NCBI GenBank assembly: GCA_976226885.1 | Contig: OZ320313.1 | Coordinates: 116,002,001-116,066,000 of the forward strand | From: Iphione sp. A-MEVVRFRX5 | Lineage: Eukaryota | Length of the DNA stretch: 64,000 nucleotides | Direction: 5' to 3' | Shown here: positions 6,073 through 22,530 of the stretch, in pieces | How the letters are laid out: every line of letters begins with the position of its first letter | How positions within the stretch are numbered: position 1 is the stretch's first letter | The notes under the pieces: generated by a model | What the model saw: only the letters and a program-made list of their open reading frames with translations | Told to the model about the DNA's origin: nothing | The model's database searches: none | Position numbers and translations under genes: made by a program

Positions 6073-6537
6073 TTACGCCATTATATGCGGCGCGGAGAAG
6101 AGGATGGCGAATGTGGAGACGATGGTGAACATGGTGAACATCCACAAGCACAGTCGATCGATAACCATGGCGGCAAACTTCCAGTCGTTGCAATGGTCGT
6201 CGAACTCCTCGTCCTTCTTCATCTTCTCCGTGAGGAAGCGCAGCTCACGCAGGATCTCCCTCAGCTCCACCTTGCCTGGGTACATGTGCAGCGAATTGTC
6301 ATCGCCTCCGCCGCCGCCCACGCTGCCTAGCTTGACGCTAGTGTAGTGCGGCGCGCTGTTGGCGCGGAAGTCGTCGTCGAGATCGAGCACATTGGCCAGT
6401 AAGCTCTTGGAGGAGCGCTCGCGCAATTCAAGGTCGCGCATTTTTGCATTTTGAAGAAGCTTCTTACGGCTGATTTCTCTCCCTGGGCGTTGCATTCGTA
6501 GCAACCACGCAAGCCATTCACATACACCCTTCTTCAC
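6073..6537 (-). CDS. CHRNA7-like: alpha7-like nAChR last coding exon (465 nt; intracellular loop and M4, stop TAA)
   Basis: Acceptor cacAG|GTG. Contains [15 protein letters not shown] and [33 protein letters not shown], motifs typical of alpha7-group subunits. Confidence 0.96.
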
Positions 6538-9500
6538 CTGTGAATGTGGATCAGATATTTAATCTTTCGCGACACGCAAAGAAGTGTTGTACTCATGGGG
6601 AAGTTTCCTAAAGACATGTGTTTTCAAACTATTCAATTCTAATGTTTATCTTTAGTGGTTCCGTTGATTGTGATTTAAGAATGCCCAGGTAAAAAAATGC
6701 GGCTTATGCAAAGTATCAAAATTTATATTTGAGATCAACAGGATCAGGTCGCTGGATTGATCAATTTTGCTGACATTTATTGTGCCAGGATCATTTGGCA
6801 TGAGTGCATGGGCCTGTACTTACCCACTGGGGCATGTCGTGTGTGTCAGGTGTCCTGTGGTGGTAGTTTAAAACCAACACCGTGAAGACCACGGATAGCG
6901 AGCACATCAGCATGATGCAGGCAAAATACATACCTAGAACGGGAACATAACTTCAGTAGGATGAGTACAGGTTAACCGAACAGGATATACACGTGGGTGT
7001 ATGAATATATAAACCAATAGATGCCATCTGCCCTTGTGACCTTAGTTATATCAGTTGAAATCAGAGTATCCAAACTTCTACCATCTTTTTAATAAAGTTT
7101 CTTTGTCATACACATGAATAATCGAGGCGTTTGTGCTACTGTTGATGATGGCAAAATGTAATATGTATACAGGTATGGCTTCATGTCGTTTGGGCGATGG
7201 TTTCAATATTTCTTAAGTAGTTATGTAAAAAACACATGTAATTTGTCTGATGTTACTAGATGCTATAATCTTACATGATTGTACATGTACATGTACAGTG
7301 AATACTTATATAAATAACATATGAATCAGGCTGATCTGTGAAGGGCGATATATATAAATGTATAGCGAATTCCAATTATAAATGTGTGCGAAAACGAGCA
7401 GCACATAATTACATGTACTTATTTATACAACATGAGTTGGAGTAATGGATATCAGATTGCGGGAGGAGGAACCTTAGGGTGTGGAATGAAAGTGGTTGTA
7501 TTAGGTGGAGGACGCACATATGTATACAGGGAGTTGCTAGTGTGGTGCGACTTCAATAGAAGTACATGTATGTTAGTGTGTACTATACGCTAAGTCGACA
7601 AAACATCTACCAGGTAGATGCACTTAACGCTATATGTGTAATTTAACAGCTACTGTATGCAGAGGCAATATAAACATATGTTTCGGTTCAAAGCATGACA
7701 ATACCAATGTTGAAAAATAAAATCATGAAACTCAATCAACTTTGCAAAAACAAGTCTAGCAGAGGTTTTCGTGTTCGTTGCATAGGCCTAACGTTGTAAT
7801 TTTCGATACCTACCGTCTCTGACCGTAAAAGGTCACAAAATTTCTTTGGTTATATATCTGCAGCATACTGGTCAGGTCACGCGAAGGCCTTGACCATACC
7901 ATTGCCGTAGCGGCTGTTGTTATATGTCGGCTACTCGGGCCAACTACAATAGATAGGGCTTAGAGGCCTAGTCCTGGAAAGATTGGGACCGCCTGTGGGA
8001 AAAATAATTCAAAGAGAAAGAACCGGGTTCTTCCCCTTCTGGAAGCCAGCAATACCCCTGCCCCACCAAACACTATAGGGTGCCATGAAAACAAAGTACT
8101 TGGACACGGGTTACAGGTATAGGAGGTTCCTTTTCAGGCCAGAAGAGTTATAATAACAGAGTTTTGTTATAAATTCACGAAAATTAACCTTAGTCCTCAA
8201 GGTCAACACCAAGTGCATCATTTTGCCACGCCAGCATTATCCAGAAAGATCAACCTCTCACGCCAAAAGAGTCCAATAGCATCACACACCGAAATCAGAA
8301 GGTTTCTTTTCTCCCAAAGAATTTGTTATTTTGGATAAGGTATATATTGATTCAAATGGAGAACGTAGCAAGCTGTTAAATTTTAAGCTCTGGCTTGAAT
8401 AGCAGAAAAAGCTCTGTGCCACCGTATAACAAGTAGAATTCTCGAGCAATTTGGTGTTTATGACTTCCGATAAAACTGGATGGTTATGGCGGCCTCTCTT
8501 ACTCACGGACAATGACAGGGATAAAGAAAAAATGGGTAAGGGGGCGGGGGCCAGCTGCCGTTCAGTTATACTTAAGGATTGAAAAAAAAAACACAAAAGC
8601 GCTTCCAGGCTCTTCGTAAAAACGGCGCTAAAAATGAAGCCTCCAGCAGACGACATATGCGGCCTAACACTGCGTCATCTGGCGCCAAAAGCTGCCGGGT
8701 CTAGCGTAGGTCTGTGCAAAATACAGACATACTTTGATTCAAAAATGTTCGTATGTAGTATGCAATATTCAGATATACATACATAGGGATATGAACAGGT
8801 ATAAGGGAATGATGGTAAGATCGCAAAAACACGAAAGCCTTGCAGAGTTGCGGTCGATACACAGGGCGCACTTTACACGGGTGAACTGTACCTGGGAAGG
8901 ACATGCTGTCATTCTGCCGGCCTATAAACACTTGCCTATCTACACAAACTTCGAGTAAATGCGTTTCTTTCAGACCATAACATACGTAAACACAAATGAA
9001 TCGAAGGAGGGTCAAATACTGTGAAACTACCAAAGCTGAACTGGCCACTCTTCTCTCTGCGAACCCCCATGGGTGTGATTGGTGTCACTTTGTGAAAGGA
9101 TGGACCAATCACACAGAGATCCTTCGGCAAACAGTGGGACCTCTGGTTTAACGAGGTAATTAAACCACATATCGATAATTCAAGTGATTCGGTTCTCCTA
9201 TTTAGACCAAAATGTTACTTAAAACACGCATCAGTATTAAATGTACTGTTTTATAATAAGAGAAACTTGTTCAAAGCACATTGTGAATACTCGCCCTCAA
9301 AATTGTCGGAGACGGTAGATTTTAAAAAGACAGCGTTAAAATTGCTAAGTGATAGCTAATAAGTAAAAAATATACGGAGTGTAAATTATATAAAAAATAT
9401 TACCATTGCTGGAATATATATTTATAAAAATGTAGGCAGGGAGGCAAGCAGAGGCATCAATGCAAGCAGGTGGAAGCTAGTGGGTGAGAGAGCATGCATG

Positions 9501-12500
9501 CGCTTGGCAGTGTTGTGACACGTGAATAGTTGTTAGTTAGACTTGGTCCATGTTTGTCCTCATGGGCTACTCGTAGTGCATTTTGGGAAACGAGATAATC
9601 ATTTGATGGGGCAAGCCTCTCACCTATGAGCGGCACAGCGTCCGAGGTTGGGGGCATTGTTTCTGCTACCAGCAGGAGAAACACAGTGAGAGACAGGAGG
9701 ATAGTGACGCCTGGAAGAGAGAGAAGACCAGACAACTGAGTCGGGCCGGACGGCGCCAGACCTCACGTAGTTAGAAAAGTCCCGCCGCCAGACGGAGCAC
9801 AGCTTGCTCGGATATCCCAGTCTCAAATTTGTGTTGGTCTTTCAGAGAAAGAGCGTCTGTTTGTATAATAATGTACGTTATACTGCTAAAAGATATTCAT
9901 TATCGGTTTCCACAGAAAACTCTCTTAAATGGAAAGGGTACGGTGCAACAAGAGAATGGCACTATTTTTATTTTTCCTGGAGTTTAAGCACAGACGTCGT
10001 TCCAGAGGAAAGACTCCCCTCCGAGATTCCCTCAGCAAGTTGTGAGCCGTTGGTCAAAAAACGTATTGTACAAAAGTAATGCAAGTTGCACACAGATCAT
10101 GTTTACACTGCAGACAACCACAGGGCCCGAATACTCTAACCGATTTGACGCAGCTCACTGGAGGAGCGCCAGTCTGCACTAGCGCCCTCTGGTGAGTAAC
10201 CGTGTCATCTCGGACGACAATACGAGTACTGCTCCCTGGTGCGATCTAGATGTACTAATCAGCGTTAGGCTGGTTGACACATTTGACACACGGTGCCAGC
10301 CAAAGGTGATACACTTGAATCACAACAGTGTGCAGTCGTTGTATCTACAGAAGTATGTTACTTGCTACAACAAGTAGTATATATATACACAGCTAGAAAC
10401 AATCAACTACTGAATGCCTATAGCCAGAACAACAAATTCTAATCTACAGTAATATACATTTAGATATACAGATTTCAATTCAAGCGTAATGCGAGTTAAA
10501 TATTACGAGTAAGGATTTTAATACTGAATTAGAAGACATAGTACTATCCAGTTAGTTATGTCGGGAAACTATTCGCTACACTTCAGGCTACTACAATGGT
10601 CAATTTCATAAAACTGTCACAAAGACTAACATTTGCGCACGTTGTTAGTTATTTACATAGTTATCTCCTACACGCTCACCAAGGTATATGTTTTCAACCT
10701 GATCTATTTTGTTATTTGCGTGCAACTTCGTTTAGTCGGTTATCCAGTTATTTACAATCGAAACATGGCGCACAAAACTAAACATTCCTTCGGGCTGTGT
10801 TTTGTCTAAATCGTGGAAACATTATCCCTTTCTGATGGACCTTTTCATTAATTACACATAATTACACGTTATACCCTGCAGATTCTTCGTCAATTAGGAG
10901 AACAAAAGGAGCGTATATAACACCAATTATTGCTAGCGTTATCAATTGTGATGATAATAAAAGGCATATCGCATATTTCGATAGAAGTATTGCACGGTAG
11001 GACATTTTCTCGTGCATCATGTAAGTCAAGAATACATAATCCAAAACTCGATACAGTTGACAAAGGTACAGGATATATACGAAGAAATATCTATATTTGA
11101 AGTGCATATAAAAGGTTCGTGAACAATAAATCAAATTAGTATCAACAGGATGTGTGTCATCATTTAAAAGTGCAATACATGAACATACTATATTTTGTGA
11201 GAACAGACCAAGTTACTCTGATTATGTATAAAGTTATATTTTAAATGGAGTAATTCTAATTGTGCATTCTTTGTTTCATCTCTCACAACAATAGGGGAGA
11301 TGACTTTGTTTAAACACCTGTGGCCTAATATGCATGTGTATCTACCCCTGGGCTAGGGCAATTCGAGCTCATTATTATACTGGCAAATTCTATGTACCAT
11401 AATAATTTTATAACAGATATGTTGTGTACAGGTCTGTTTGAAAAAAAATATGCTGGTAACATTCCTTTATAACTTCCTGTATGTCGAACACAACCTTTCA
11501 TTAAAATGTTTTATATGAAAATGTACTTCTTTGAGACGGGCGCAAAAGGCGTTTGTAGGAGTCTATAAAGATTTGTCTACGTATTTAGCAAAACAACTGA
11601 ATTTTTCGGTTTTAATTAAGTGGTGACAGATTGTCAGTCATACTACTGCAGTATAGTGGGTGTTTGCCTTTTCCAGATCGGGTCTCCTCAAATTAGAATG
11701 GGCCACTACTGGGACTAAGGCTGGGCTTCAATGTGTCTGATTTGCAAAAAAAAAAAAAAAAAAAGGGGGGGGGGGCCCTGTGTAAGGGGAAAACATGGTA
11801 TCATAAGCAGGAACTAAGCTTTTCCATGTGTCTGGTATGTGTATCCATGTCCATATGTCTGAGGTCCAAAACAAGCAATGTCCATGAATTTTCCCGTAGA
11901 AACAGATCCAGACAGAAAAACTGATGAGTAGGGTACGAACATGATGGTTTACATCAGGGCCCAGGCTATTAGATTATGAAAAAGTACCTAATTTGCATAT
12001 CATTTGCATAAAGCTGCATGCGTATTAAGAAATTTAAGGAGAAAGTGTCACTATTTGCACAGTAATTGTTCTGTTTCAAGATACATGTATTTACGGAAAA
12101 AAAGTACGCTCTTTATATACACAGTTATTGTTCATTTTCAAGAATTTAAGGGTGAAGCCACACAATTGAGTTAATACTCAGTTTACCTAACGCACATACA
12201 CACATGGATATACATGGAAAAGGCCAATCAGTGATTGTCTGAAACTGTCTGGGAAATCAAACAAAACAGGTCCTGTATATATAGAAAAATACCAGATACA
12301 AGGAAACCCAGCCTTAAATAGAAAAAGACGTATTGTGAACTGCCTGACAATACTCCAAAGGCAGAGAGTAACGCAGAATTGTACAGGTTTATAGACGAAC
12401 GATTTAAAACAAAAGGTGCTTATGTTTCAATCATAATTTAAGTGCAGAAAAATTCTTTAAAATCATTTTACATGATAGCAAGTGTAGTATAATTTATATC

Positions 12501-15500: not shown

Positions 15501-18500
15501 TTGGGTATGAAACTGGATATGTCGCCTCCTTCTCCTTGCAGTTGGAGGTCTATAGCAGACCCATCGTAAGTCCAGGAACCAAATTTCATGGTGCATTTCT
15601 GGTCGTCAAATGGGAACCACGTAATATCTATCTTACATGTACTAAGGAAGAGTCCCGGTGGCACCCAAAGACAATCGCCGTTTGACGAGATAACGACGTT
15701 CGTCGGGAATGTACTGTCGATGTCTTCGTCAGCACTATTAAGATAAAGCGTAAGGATAACAGCAATGAATCTGTTTTGCCATTTAACAAGTTGATTATAT
15801 AGGGACACAGAAACGATCGGTCAAACCGAAGAAAAATCCTTTCCAATCATGGTCTCCTTCTCTCGGTAGCAAAACTTCGCTTTACATAAATTCTTTACCT
15901 ATCCAAGAAAGGTGACCGCGCTAGGTCGGAGTTGCATTTCAGATCAAATCAGATTTTCAAAAAATGATTTCGAGCAATTCGGGAAATTCTATCCAACAGT
16001 AGTGTGGTGAAAGATGAAATTTGTCTTTATCTATGTTCACTTGCCCTTTCGTATTGATTCATTTGATTTGATTGATTTGATTTTTATTGAGAAACAGCCA
16101 TTCTTACCCAGAATGGTTTGCATTAGTATCTCAATACTACTGACTACTACTTTATCGAATTGTATGGCTACGTGTTAGTACATGTTGTTCAACACAGATT
16201 TTAAACAATTTCTTTTCCACTCCAATCCATCTACAGGGCAACTTGTTCCATTGCGTTAACCCGTCATACTTGATACTTTTTGCTCAGTCAGTCTGCTGGC
16301 GAATTCTTTTCAGCAATATATTTAACCGGATCGTTACCTGTTATACATAAGAATATCAGGTTTCCAGAGATATTTCGGTGGAACCCGTATGCTCTTCAAG
16401 CCGCCATACTCGGTTTCATTCCATCGGAGACTGTAGTCATTCCACACCTGCAACATTTAGACCAGTGGTAGATGCTTTATACCCGAATGGAATTCGGCAT
16501 CACTTCAAGTCGGTTCCAAATTTAGTTATCTCTTCATGATAGCATATATTAACATCTACAATTTTCCTCCGCGTCCATATATATGTATACTGATTTATTC
16601 AATATTTCAATTGCACCTATATCTGGGAGACCTGAGGTAAGAAGTGTGCAAATGTGTCTTTGTTGTCGTGTGTGTGATAAAAAAAACTTCAGAGCAATTA
16701 CAGGAATTCGCAGGAGATTACCAGAATTATATTAATAATGGAGCGATTAGATGGGGAAAGACAGTTAGCAGAGACACGAAAGGAAATTAGAACAGAATGA
16801 CCGATTCGAGTTCTCTCACCACTTACATGTATATTGTACAATGAGTAAGTGCGACAAAACATTGTTTAGTTTTATTTTAATCTACTCTATTGTGAAGTGT
16901 GAGCGAGAAACGAGCAGGAACATCACAAACAATGGAAATGGAACCTCACTCGATGTTTCTCGTCTGAAGTCACGTATTCCAGGGTGTTTCATTGGATTTT
17001 GTAAGGAAGGAGTACCTGGACCATAGGTCTTTAAATACACTGGTACAACAATTTTCTGTCCACTTATATATTCGTCCCCTCTTGTGGCTGTGTTTTGCTC
17101 ACGTCCCTCGGTGGGTTCTCTACTCCCCTTTAAAAAATGCTACATTGGTTTTGATACCAATAATAGCTCATGACTTTTACAAGGAACGAAGTTCGCAGGT
17201 TAAGGTCACTGGGCTCGAGTTTTCCTAGGATCACACGACGTGTAATCATAAAGACTACCAAAGACTGCCTTGCAAATGCAATCGAATGGGGGAATCAATC
17301 CATGTGGACAGCTGTAGTTACATGTAAGCGTTCACATGAACTACGTCGTGCTAGAAGGCGGTCCTTTCTTGGCTGCGGCCACCTGCACGTGAACTAGCAG
17401 CACTCACCTGGCAGCACCCAAGAGCGTTCCCTTTGCCAAGTGCTTCCCACTCCCCATCCCTTATCAATCAAAACGTATATTAACGTTCCAGTGCCTCGGC
17501 TGACCAAACGCACATCTTATAGAGAGGGCGTACTAAGAAGCAGCCCAAGGACTTGTTAACCGTCGGGGCTGGTTAATCTTCCTGCCAGCTTAAAACTAGA
17601 GGGGTGAGTAGCCGGTGGTATTTTCAACCACTACCAATCACGGCTCTCCAACTGAGAAACCTTACCAACCTACGCGCATGCTACCTACAGAAAAAAAGTG
17701 GCAGTATTCTATCAGTGTGGAAGAGGAAAACAACAGGTGAATCATCTATCATCGCGGAAGTCTGTTCGGTCCCTGATGCATATCTATCCACGCTATGGAA
17801 CCAAGAATTATGCAGAAATGTTTACCAGGCACTAAACGGACGGCGCTCAGGTAACGTGCGCCATGACGGAGTTTGGTGTGTGTCTCTATATATAAACATG
17901 TATTTATATATCCAGGGAATGCCATGCTTGCTTCCGTTACGATTGAAATTTATGGCGAAAATAATCTCACTCTTGGTACTGGCACCAGGGGTGTTTTCAC
18001 ATTTTTTAACACAGTAATATTTTAGATGTAACCGAGCCTGGTGATACAGATAACATGGATAAAGGCTCATTTCAATTTTCATTCTGAACGGAATTAACAT
18101 CGTTCTTTCCTACCAAAGATCTTATTTGCTAACTTAACACTACAAAGAAGGAAGTAATAACAAAAGTGTACTACTTGATAAAAATGGTGTACTCTTCTCC
18201 CGTGGAATGTAAGATATTTGGAAGAATATATATACGAATATGTTTATACAAGTATATATATTCGGTATACATGTGCGAAATCCAAAATTATCAAAATATA
18301 TACTTAATGTATAAAGCAATGCATATATATATAAACCTAGAACATTTGAGACATCCTTAGAATAGTTACTCTTATTTATTATCTTAAAGGTGATGAAGTA
18401 TAACAAGATCATACTCAATTTGATTTCACAGATGCGACAATTCTCAAATGGTTCTTTTTATGCTTGTTTTAAAACTTAGGCTAACACAGAGTGTGGTACG

Positions 18501-21268
18501 AGGACAAGTAAAGATGCCCTAAGATCATAATGGTGAGGTAGTATCTTATGGCATAGAATTTCTATAGGCAAGGTAAGGTGCTGCCTAGCTGAATGTGAAG
18601 GCAGGGAGTGAAGGACTTTGACTCTCACGACCAGGGGCACCGACAGGAGCAAAATGCACATTACGGCATTTGACGTGACATGCTTATCATTATATTGTGT
18701 TTGTTCGTATATTGTATATATACCATATGACTATATAGAGAGAGATAATGTACAAGATTTAAGAAAAAGAGATGCAGTAGAGGAAGGGGGTTGACGTTCA
18801 TTTAGGGTAGGTGAGGGGTTCTTTTCATGCATGATTCATTTAGATTCTGGAGTTAGGCTGGGCATGCAATTTAGGCTTTCCTTAAATGAATCAGCTCAGG
18901 GTGGCACTATAAAAAGCTGATGGGTTCTCGTCAACCGTTTTTTTTTTCGATCAAATTTTGAGAATCCGAAACTGTCCATGAAAAAGGTAGTAATTGTATT
19001 AAACATTGTCTCCAAAGCCAAAAAAAATCTACTGTGTTCATACGTTCCCACGTCGATCCCTACCGGATTGACCAAAGTCAGGATTGGTATTAACATTTGA
19101 GCAAACAATAATAAATAAACGGAAATGAAATTAATCAGCACAGAAAAGTCGAAACTGGTAACAATTTCACAATTTTCACTGATTAGTCTAGGAAACGCGT
19201 TAGGAGAGATTTTGACACCACCCTGAGAGTGAGGAAAGCATGTGAAGAATTCAGGTCCCTTCACTAGAAATCAAAATACACGGAGGATAAAATAAGTTGA
19301 TATACACTTATTTAAATCAATCGAGGATAAAATAAGTTGAAAGTTAATTTATATTATTTTATGGGTTAGCTAATAGTTATTTACTACGGGGGAGGGGGAT
19401 TATTTAAATTAATCGTTTATTACCTCTGAGGCCCAAGGCCAGAGGTGTTAATCTTTCATTTTAATTTTGAATGGTTTAAATGCTCCCTTTTTCTTGTAAG
19501 TTAAATAATTATTGCCGATAGTTGTCTTGCATAAGGCACACTTAAGTTAAAACGTGAAATTTCCTAAGTGACAAGATTATAGGTTTACCAGCAATTTTGC
19601 CTTTCCCATGTCAACCTAACATCTTACTAGCGTGCGCTGTCAACTTGTTTTATCCTCATTTGGCTTTATCCTTAAATGTTTCTGACTTACCAAATTTAAC
19701 CAGATATTTGTGTTTATGATTTGATTCTTTTCATCCTGTGAGGAAGAGAGAAAGAGTGTGTTATTACAGAAACGCTACCGAGCCGCGTGAGGGTTAAGAG
19801 TCACGCGACCTTTCACGGGTCAAGGTCAGACCGCCAGTTAACTTACCATATTCAACCATATATTAGATGTTAATATTTGGTTCTTTTCATCCTGGGAAAA
19901 ATAAAAAACAGAGATTAGTCAGCTGTAACAGCGGTAAGATGGACACTTGGCACCTCGAATTCGGTGTCTCTAGGGGGCAGCACAGCAGTGAGATTATTAT
20001 TGGCTGCTGCCAGCAAGCGATGTAGGATTACCAACACTATGCCGTCAGCAAACAAGAATGGAACAATTAGACTAAAACACGCTAGTTACACAGCACACTG
20101 TGGTGTAAGATCCATCTCAGGGCATGAAATCACGATACAGACTTGAAATATTCAAAAAGGCTTGCTAGAAAAAGATTACCGTCGTAAAGTTTACAAGAAA
20201 AAAGTCGTGTGGCATTGCTACCTTGGTGTAGATTGCCGGTTTCAGTTACGAATATCCCGAATCTAGCAGTTGATAACGAGACTGAACACTGTATTCTAGG
20301 AACATACGTCCCCACAGAAAAGTGGAAAGGCACTTTGACTATCAAAATCATATTTCCATTGTGTAAGATCGTGTTTTGCTGTCTTTCCAATCGCCACCGT
20401 GGGAAAGTAAACCACGTCACCAAGTGATATGCAAAGAGGGTGGTTTAAGTATTCAGCAGGGTTCGACATTCAAAATGTACTCCAAAACCCGAAAACCAAA
20501 CTTCAGTCGTGTCCAGTTAGTGATAATCAGCGAACTAAAAACATTAATCTAATTGGAATAGTACACACAATAATGTGAAACACAGCAAGGGACAAGACGC
20601 TGTGTCGAATCACGCAGTTCACGCCGGTGCACAGGAATCGAAATGGTTCGATCAGAAAGAAAAAAACAAGAGGAATAACAACACTCCAGCGAGACAATAA
20701 TACAAATGTATATGACAGTGCACATAAACATGGCTTCGTTATTGAAACATACAAATAACAGACATGCATTATAGGAATCATTGACCAGTGACGCTTGATA
20801 TTTGATTAATGTATGCTACTAGTTGTGAGCTAATCGTCACTCTGCCATTTACGGATCCAAATGCTACTAATTCGATACATTACTAACCGCAAGGAGCACA
20901 TCGCACTGACAGCATTAAATTACCGTGCTGTTTTCTCATGTTCTTCTAAACCATACGTGTGTTCTTATGCATTGCTAGATGGCCAAATCCATTAACTACC
21001 GTAACGCAAACTGGTAGACGTTTTGTCTCATTCTTTGAATGGAGTCATTTATGCGGATCATGCCACTAGCTTGGTTCGGTATATTTAAAACAAGCAATGA
21101 TCATGGAGGTAGCTAGCAACTACATTACCACGTCGATGATTTGCTGAAGAACCAGCCCAAAGTGGACAGTCAGGGCCGCGCTTTCGTTGGCCACCGGCCG
21201 CTCCAGCGTGTCGTACCTGGAGAACAGGTCAGTCAGGAGCCTCTTCTCGTACGGCCCCTGATGGGTAC
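6073..21268 (-). CDS. CHRNA7-like: Nicotinic acetylcholine receptor alpha subunit, alpha7-like (pentameric ligand-gated cation channel); multi-exon, 5' coding exon not located
   Basis: The spliced exons give loop A (WKPDILMYN), the Cys-loop ([15 protein letters not shown]), loop B (WTYDG), loop C vicinal cysteines (YDCCPEQY), GEK before M2, and M1-M4. Exon sizes 140/45/110/254/195/87/110/465 match the CHRNA7 pattern. All junctions are GT-AG with compatible phases. Confidence 0.96.
6824..6933 (-). CDS. CHRNA7-like: alpha7-like nAChR exon 9 (110 nt, M3): (G)[36 protein letters not shown]
   Basis: Acceptor gttctAG|GT, donor TGG|GTaagt. Translated by hand. Confidence 0.95.
9624..9710 (-). CDS. 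CHRNA7-like: alpha7-like nAChR exon 8 (87 nt, M2): (G)[28 protein letters not shown]
   Basis: Acceptor tctcttccAG|GC, donor ATAG|GTgaga. Confidence 0.96.
10180..10196 (-). promoter_or_regulatory. CTCF-like motif (TCACCAGAGGGCGCTA)
   Basis: Close match by eye to the CTCF core consensus. Confidence 0.4.
13424..13618 (-). CDS. CHRNA7-like: alpha7-like nAChR exon 7b (195 nt): (G)[64 protein letters not shown]
   Basis: Acceptor tttgtttctAG|GT, donor TTAG|GTaaga. Phase 1/1, with a canonical alpha7-like M1. Confidence 0.95.
13703..13897 (-). CDS. CHRNA7-like: alpha7-like nAChR exon 7a (195 nt): (D)[64 protein letters not shown]
   Basis: Acceptor gtctttgcAG|AT, donor TGTG|GTaggt. Phase 1/1, open reading frame. 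Confidence 0.92.
15481..15734 (-). CDS. CHRNA7-like: alpha7-like nAChR fused exon 5/6 (254 nt): (S)ADEDIDSTF...[15 protein letters not shown]...WTYDG...NGEWELV
   Basis: Acceptor cttaatAG|TGCT, donor GTCG|GTaaga. Lies inside ORF 15392-15808 and contains the Cys-loop and loop B. Confidence 0.96.
16055..16140 (-). mobile_element. Short retroposon 3' tail relic
   Basis: The minus strand has CAATAAAAA followed by an (ATCAA)n tandem tail, as seen at LINE ends. Confidence 0.35.
16338..16447 (-). CDS. CHRNA7-like: alpha7-like nAChR exon 4 (110 nt): [36 protein letters not shown](S)
   Basis: Acceptor gttgcAG|GTG, donor AACAG|GTaacg. Contains the loop A motif. Confidence 0.95.
19691..19735 (-). CDS. 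CHRNA7-like: alpha7-like nAChR exon 3b (45 nt): [15 protein letters not shown]
   Basis: Acceptor ctcttcctcacAG|GAT, donor TTG|GTaagt. Same length and phase as exon 3a. Confidence 0.93.
19847..19891 (-). CDS. CHRNA7-like: alpha7-like nAChR exon 3a (45 nt): [15 protein letters not shown]
   Basis: Acceptor tttttcccAG|GAT, donor ATG|GTaagt. A branch-point-like ctgactaat lies at 19914-19922. Encodes the loop D Trp. Confidence 0.93.
21129..21268 (-). CDS. CHRNA7-like: alpha7-like nAChR exon 2 (140 nt): (G)[46 protein letters not shown]
   Basis: Acceptor tatttccAG|GT, donor GTG|GTaatg. Phase 1 in, phase 0 out. Not in the ORF track; translated by hand. Confidence 0.95.
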
Positions 21269-22530
21269 CTGGAAATAGACCAGACAGGAAGAACATCACC
21301 CAATTATCACTATATTCTAATGGGATTTTTGTTCAAATGTCATTGGATAAATTACTAGCACAGTTTCATGCCTTTCATTAGCCTGTCACTGTGTCTTTGA
21401 AGTACCAGAGATTTAAGGGTCTTTCCCGGTGAATTTATGACGGGTTTCTTTCAGACCACTTTTCTTTTCTCATTTATGTTTCATCCTGGTTTATGTGATT
21501 ATTCAAATAATGGAAATAACAATGTTTGGATGAACGGTGTAGCTCTTCACCAAATCATCAAGATGAGGATATGATGAATTCTTTGTTCTCTAGACCAAAG
21601 TTTGTGCCCATGCATAGACAGATAGAAAGGAATCATAAGGTCACTTCAAATGCCCTTTCGACAGATGCTTATGTGGCATTTACTCTGTGTGGGAGCATGA
21701 AAGACAAGGGCTTCATTGCTCTAGAGAGGATGGCGCTCTTCAGGTTTGGAAATGAAAATATCCGTATAAGAGGTGTCTCTAATATAGAACCCTATATTTG
21801 TTGTCTGGGGTATGTTTGGTTATAGAGAAAGTACGGCCCAGTTACAGACAGCATGAGAAGGACAAGTGGCTTGTAATTGGAAGTCGCTGATAGACCTTTG
21901 CAGGAAATTTCGTTCCAAATTTATCAATAACCTTTATTTCTTTCTTTCTGTTATTGCTCATTAGCATCTCATAGTCTTTACAAGAAAAGGGATACACTCC
22001 TGTATGGTAGTCGCGGTCACATTTACTACAAAGTAAGTGGAACGGTGGTGGATATGTGCCAAAAACTACTAGGCTAGCTTGAAAGGTTATTTAACCCTGT
22101 AAATACGGATTATTTAGTGTACGATCTGAACAATCGATATATAAAAACAATAAGGGCGATGGGTCTGTAGTTGCCTGATATTTAATGTTGATATAATGTA
22201 TGTAGACAATTTTCCTGTTTTTAATACATGTATACCATAATCAACATATCTTTACGTATTCAAGAGCACCTCAACATTAGGCCGAAGAGTTTCTTGTTAT
22301 TCAGATTTTGTATATTCATAATGCTTCCACTGTGAACATTGCAAGCTCCTGTTCTGTAGTGACTGGTGGTTTAGAGGCTGTTGCACTACAATATAGGTTT
22401 TCATTTTGGGGAAAAATATAAATTTTAAGTGATACCTACAAAGCTCAAGTGTTTTTAAATACCTTCAATCTCCATGCATGCATTTCTACTGACTTCTTGC
22501 TTGCAGTTTAAAAACAAAGTGCTATTTTTT

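Follow-up and report, generated by a model that had tools for sequence, protein, structure and literature searches.

The stretch of DNA analysed here, called the window in the following, comprises 64,000 nucleotides (nt) of the genome of Iphione sp. A-MEVVRFRX5 (GCA_976226885.1, contig OZ320313.1, positions 116,002,001 to 116,066,000). Its minus strand carries a gene for an alpha7-like nicotinic acetylcholine receptor (nAChR) alpha subunit, a pentameric ligand-gated ion channel, in which the small third exon is present in two tandem versions, 3a and 3b. Stop-free stretches of the minus strand make up a complete nAChR exon series. The Pfam domains Neur_chan_LBD and Neur_chan_memb were matched in order across successive exons, and the closest solved relatives were alpha-7 chains (E = 3e-33). 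The Cys-loop is present in exon 5 and the vicinal cysteine pair of loop C (YDCCPEQY) in both copies of the loop C/M1 exon. The YDCC motif of loop C identifies the product as an alpha subunit.

Two tandem versions of exon 3

The interval from exon 2 to exon 4 is organised as follows.

21268-21129, minus strand: exon 2, constitutive, 140 nt, from its open reading frame (ORF) and splice sites; ends ...LQQIIDV in phase 0 and covers Neur_chan_LBD positions 1-40
19891-19847, minus strand: exon 3a, 45 nt, beta1-beta2 loop and beta2 strand with the loop D Trp; from its open frame, splice sites and orthologues
19846-19736, minus strand: intron between 3a and 3b, 111 nt; splice sites read
19735-19691, minus strand: exon 3b, 45 nt; from its open frame, splice sites and orthologous copies in the loci L040, L042, L037/L038 and L039
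19658-19640, minus strand: element A, 5' arm, UGAGGAUAAAACAAGUUGA; conserved by BLAST against L040 and L039, best duplex partner
19340-19323, minus strand: element A'1, 3' arm, UCAACUUAUUUUAUCCUC; complement of A
19300-19283, minus strand: element A'2, second identical 3' arm, 40 nt downstream of A'1 (start to start)
16447-16338, minus strand: exon 4, constitutive, 110 nt, the downstream acceptor; from its ORF and splice sites

Both copies of exon 3 are in phase 0; a pyrimidine tract and cag lie before each, and gtaagt directly after it. They are identical at 35 of 45 nt, and a repeat search detected a direct repeat over the two (68 nt, 76%, spacing 156 nt). An earlier note on this DNA had described two 45-nt phase-0 exons with GTAAGT donors, 111 nt apart, which differ at four amino acids and in four further, synonymous codons. 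Exact reading bore out this description and gave the same counts. Exon 2 ends with ATC GAC GTG at 21129 and exon 4 starts with GTG TGG AAT at 16447; the frames fit with either copy placed between them, and both sets of junctions proposed in that note (21129->19891/19847->16447 and 21129->19735/19691->16447) are in frame.

The 15 residues encoded by exon 3 align to DEKNQVLTTNIWLQM of human alpha-7. We take this segment to be D44-M58 in alpha-7 numbering, i.e. the beta1-beta2 loop followed by the beta2 strand with Trp55 of loop D. The beta1-beta2 loop of alpha-7 contacts the M2-M3 linker. The alignment and the numbering agree with the earlier note, which placed the loop D Trp of the complementary agonist-binding face in this segment and the segment itself next to the gating interface. 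Common to 3a and 3b are the DEKNQ gating loop, the loop D Trp and Asn57. The two copies differ at alpha-7 positions 50, 51, 52 and 58 (L/I, T/N, S/T and M/L, respectively).

The intron between the copies, 111 nt in the window, measures 132-357 nt in the relatives described below. The conserved motif CTGTAAT, some 38 nt ahead of the acceptor of 3b, is a possible branch site. From its length and this motif the intron is expected to be spliceable. A 10-bp G+C hairpin, GUCGCGUGA...UCACGCGGC, is located in mid-intron (about 19809-19782, minus strand). The whole 111-nt intron folded no better than its shuffled versions (z 0.34). Long hairpins are present in the corresponding intron of L040 and L039, and that of L040 is strong (z = -3.2). 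A hairpin in this intron was considered as a shared device and dismissed because it is absent in L037 and Capitella and because the fold of the window intron does not exceed shuffles.

Conservation of the pair and of its silent sites

Relatives of the gene were found by an exhaustive search with a profile of exon 5, which yielded, besides full-length proteins, a large number of short genomic ORFs; named proteins came from word searches seeded with two full-length matches. In the annelid-like contigs exon 5 is 80-87% identical to that of Capitella. The loci L041 and L043 ended before exon 3 and did not enter the comparison of the pair. L037 and L038 belong to one assembly and are not independent.

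Seven further loci of six other genomes have an exon-3 pair at the equivalent place; a chance match is thereby excluded. The pair has intact frames and splice sites in Capitella teleta, Priapulus caudatus and four annelid-like genomes. Among named relatives the closest is CAPTEDRAFT_221893 of Capitella teleta, where the copies at L033:5311-5355 and L033:5614-5658 (DEKNQILQTNIWLRL) are both flanked by AG/GT. The peptide of exon 3a is identical in the window, L040 and L042, with one silent change each. The pair of L037/L038 reads IMKSNMWLNV and IITTNIWFNL. That of L039 consists of an a copy with VLNSNLWLNM and a b copy at L039:3111-3155, which starts with NEKME, not with DEKNQ. Priapulus caudatus has DEKNQIMLANIWLQM and a second copy, 357 nt apart. 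Owenia fusiformis has one clear exon 3 and, 1 kb upstream, a much-changed open 45-nt copy (NEKTEALTSSTWWTM, L034:46025-46069), which is flanked by AG/GT and starts with NEKTE. Judging from these altered starts, use of the alternative copy in L039 and Owenia would also alter the beta1-beta2 gating loop. A relative from Pinctada has a single copy of exon 3. The exon-3 copies of the window, L040, L042, L037 and L039 fall into two groups, one with all a copies and one with all b copies.

The proportion of changed silent sites (pS) between the window and L040 or L042 was 0.84-1.09 in exons 2, 4 and 5, i.e. these sites are saturated. In 3a and 3b pS was 0.14-0.15, one change per about seven sites in each, and the proportion of changed non-synonymous sites (pN) was 0.00-0.03. 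The contrast at silent sites between the exon 3 copies and exons 2, 4 and 5 was highly significant (window versus L040, Fisher P = 1.8e-7). Comparison with L037 or L039 gave a pS of 0.71-1.00 in exons 2, 4 and 5 and of 0.22-0.57 in 3a/3b (P about 0.002-0.005), with a pN of 0.05-0.17 in 3a/3b. With Capitella pS was 0.79-0.90 in exons 2, 4 and 5 and pN 0.08-0.13 in 3a/3b, and in this comparison an excess of silent-site constraint in 3a/3b was not seen. The introns of the window and its relatives could not be aligned except at the A and A' elements.

Because both copies have remained nearly unchanged where silent sites elsewhere in the gene are saturated, we conclude from the sequence comparisons that 3a and 3b are both functional coding exons. 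The comparisons further indicate a constraint on their RNA sequence beyond the protein code. Constraint of this kind is a usual mark of regulated alternative exons. It is very improbable in this light that a single copy is used and that the second one is left over, silent, from a tandem duplication. The changed N-terminal half of one copy in L039 and in Owenia (NEKME..., NEKTE...) would suit such decay. A relic should show the same decay as the neighbouring intron, whereas both copies have kept an open frame, AG/GT borders and a near-identical sequence.

Elements beside exon 3b and the proposed use of one copy at a time

Within the exon 2 to exon 4 interval BLAST detected only two intronic matches to the relatives, and these are complementary to each other. 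Element A (18 nt) begins 33 nt past the donor of 3b, and the two A' copies are located about 300 nt further downstream. The predicted duplex of A with A'1 has -25.2 kcal/mol and is the best that A can form in the whole interval; that of A with A'2 has -24.8 kcal/mol. A and A' are reciprocal best partners across the interval in the window, L040 and L039 (-22 to -25 kcal/mol), and the same pair occurs in L042 (-25.7 kcal/mol). In L037/L038, AGAAAAAAACAGG at the place of A pairs with CCUGUUUUUUUCU 0.5-1 kb downstream. There both arms have changed in letters and 13 contiguous pairs are kept.

The sequence that runs from 3b through A'2 (431 nt, 19270-19700) has a predicted folding energy of -97.3 kcal/mol (z = -4.23; none of 100 shuffles was as good), and the predicted helix extends to position +5 of the 3b donor. 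Just upstream of A (19672-19661, minus strand) a half copy resembling A, AAGGAUAAAGCC, was seen, in the window only. In the predicted fold it pairs (about 19671-19664) with A'2, which gives two nested helices. The exact 18-mer of A occurs once in the 1.18-Gb genome; with one mismatch it was found at eight places, three of them at this locus, and the reversed control at three. Transposon ends or a repeat family as the origin of A/A' were ruled out since the 18-mer has no second exact copy in the genome. A search of 19000-20200 against Rfam found no known RNA family.

We propose that 3a and 3b are functional, alternatively used versions of exon 3, of which most mRNAs join one between exon 2 and exon 4, that the choice is probably made at the RNA level and that in annelids the pair corresponds to exons 3a and 3b of arthropod alpha6. 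We assign this reading a probability of about 0.68. With one copy per mRNA the gene would give rise to two subunit isoforms which share the DEKNQ loop and the loop D Trp and differ at four positions of the beta2 strand beside this Trp. The isoforms may then differ in pharmacology or assembly. The A/A' stem, once formed, would alter the availability of the 3b donor, and a masked 3b donor would favour 3a. The kept pairing of the stem in L037/L038 is no more than suggestive, as this stem is rich in A and U and the two loci are not independent.

In fly and beetle, transcripts of alpha6 take either 3a or 3b, and none of 30 cDNAs contained both (PMC1919356). Several points weigh against an extension to the window. 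A look-up of sequencing runs for 16300-21300 listed no RNA run. Spliced annelid transcript fragments were sought with a query of Capitella 3b, exon 4 and exon 5, and none was found; the close matches (80-89% identity) covered exon 5 only and were genomic ORFs, and the spliced fragments recovered in the protein searches were arthropod-like. The anatomy does not by itself enforce exclusion. Steric exclusion was rejected on the length of the intron between the copies, here and in the relatives. Frame-based exclusion was rejected because 45 nt keep the frame even with both copies in. Near 3a neither a conserved element nor a strong partner of A/A' was detected in the window or L040; with no selector found beside 3a, the classical arrangement, in which a selector for each exon competes for a single docking site, is not seen. 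The stem of L037/L038 is rich in A and U and could be partly due to chance. Fifteen residues were too few to match the a and b copies to those of Capitella, the priapulid and the arthropods. Finally, both copies are contained in silkworm type III transcripts, which occur in adults (PMC1919356), and in tick Iric-alpha6A transcripts (PMC13578988).

The last point leads to the possibility that inclusion of both copies is the usual or a major regulated form, in which case the beta2 strand would be repeated over 15 residues and the isoform would not conduct or would act as a dominant negative, and would not be a pharmacological variant. The preserved frame and the spliceable 111-nt intron with its possible branch site would permit this, and gene models of Capitella, Priapulus and several arthropods include both copies. 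The models of Capitella and Priapulus, however, also join both loop C/M1 or both M2 exons. The resulting topology is unworkable and, therefore, these models look like prediction artefacts. In the tick the isoform with both copies did not carry current (PMC13578988). The cDNA counts of fly and beetle speak against joint inclusion, and the separate conservation of an a type and a b type fits two alternative beta2 strands better than a repeat. Taken together, we regard regular joint inclusion as improbable and favour the use of one copy at a time.

Origin of the pair and known systems

The remaining exons of the window gene were read from stop-free stretches.

15734-15481, minus strand: exon 5, with the Cys-loop
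13931-13389, minus strand: two loop C/M1 exons, a tandem pair
near 9708, minus strand: single M2 exon
near 6950, minus strand: M3 exon
end at 6076, minus strand: last exon

Proteins annotated as alpha6 were among the best arthropod matches; the window gene has one M2 exon only, and a search for a second one in this gene found none. The loop C/M1 pair is strung together in the gene models of Capitella and Owenia. In the Priapulus model (L036, protein P0305) two M2 exons follow each other in a row, VTILLSLMMF... and VTILLALMVF..., along with both copies of exon 3. This joining of two M2 exons is probably wrong in the model, and the two exons as such resemble the exon 8 cluster of insect alpha6.

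When the 1.18-Gb assembly that contains the window was searched with a sequence pattern, most matches were due to chance and about 12 were exon-3 sequences of paralogues. Two further nAChR exon-3 sequences, DEKNQIMTTNVWLTQ and DEKNQIMKSNVWLRM, are on the same strand as the window gene at G000:C1:115696182 and 115832722 (L011 and L012), 325 kb and 190 kb away from it, and each of the two genes has a single exon 3. With these neighbours the region constitutes an nAChR gene cluster. A second 45-nt copy was sought within 1.5 kb of exon 3 in five paralogues and was not found.

Arthropod alpha6-type proteins contain one or both of a 15-residue version and DEKNQLLITNIWLSL. The first copy is identical at 14 of 15 residues between Capitella and arthropods. 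Two histories are compatible with this likeness. The annelid pair may have arisen independently of the arthropod alpha6 pair, the same small exon having been duplicated convergently; the likeness would then be functional and not historical. Consistent with this, the a and b types could not be matched between annelids, Capitella, Priapulus and arthropods, the Pinctada relative has one copy, the five paralogues have single exons 3 and the window gene lacks the alternative M2 exons of the insect type. Against it stand the near-identity of the first copy in Capitella and arthropods, the two M2 exons which Priapulus has in common with insect alpha6, and the fact that annelids, a priapulid and arthropods all have the pair at one and the same exon of one gene subfamily. 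We consider convergence quite possible, though on balance we doubt it, and retain the view that the annelid pair is the counterpart of the arthropod one.

A bolder version of this view is put forward tentatively. The 3a/3b switch may predate the arthropods and would then be at least as old as the last ancestor shared by these annelids, perhaps as old as the protostome ancestor; the stem would mask the 3b donor in annelids, and the frozen silent sites would be signals for the choice of the exon. We think it rather unlikely that all of this holds together.

The exons 3a and 3b of insect alpha6 have been known since 2002. Alpha6 is the target of spinosad; hence the interest in this switch in insects. 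In the literature searched we found no mention of an exon 3a/3b pair outside the arthropods. A survey of lophotrochozoan nAChRs did not treat alternative exons. Likewise, the literature searched on the arthropod cluster turned up no mechanism which keeps 3a and 3b apart there. The arthropod cluster as such was known; new is the extension of the alpha6-type 3a/3b arrangement to annelids and a priapulid, together with a candidate regulatory stem. With this, the question of what the two versions flanking loop D do is no longer one of an arthropod peculiarity and may concern an old trait of alpha7-like receptors. How co-splicing of small, frame-neutral exons is avoided can be tested on the conserved stem next to 3b and on the frozen silent sites. 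The public gene models of Capitella and Priapulus, which join both copies, are probably wrong at this place.

Short complementary intronic elements that adjoin a duplicated exon and are conserved where the remainder of the intron has diverged are also found in Dscam1, 14-3-3xi, human ATE1 and the SCN-alpha exons 5a/5b (PMC4691838, PMC7797038, PMC6071210, PMC12772994). As in these pairings, both arms have changed in a more distant relative of the window. Unlike in the docking-site and selector systems, a single proximal arm was found in the window, located by 3b, together with a doubled distal arm and no exon in the loop, and the pairing is predicted from sequence.

The exon itself has a counterpart in vertebrates. 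Exon 3 of vertebrate CHRNA7 is, as far as is known, single and constitutive. Like the window exons it has 45 nt and encodes nearly the same peptide (DEKNQVLTTNIWLQM), and its flanking exons, of 140 and 110 nt, match exons 2 and 4 of the window. The closest parallel is the arthropod alpha6 cluster. Drosophila Dalpha6 and its relatives in Tribolium, Bombyx, Plutella and Ceratitis, in which 3a/3b has been conserved over about 300 million years (PMC1919356), and alpha6 of Ixodes ricinus, described in 2026 (PMC13578988), have two tandem 45-nt versions of exon 3, as does the window gene. In both cases the versions share the pattern DEKNQ...N.WL... and occupy an equivalent position in an alpha7-like gene. 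The window gene differs from arthropod alpha6 in that the host is of the annelid type and has, instead of an alternative M2 (exon 8) cluster, a pair of loop C/M1 exons.

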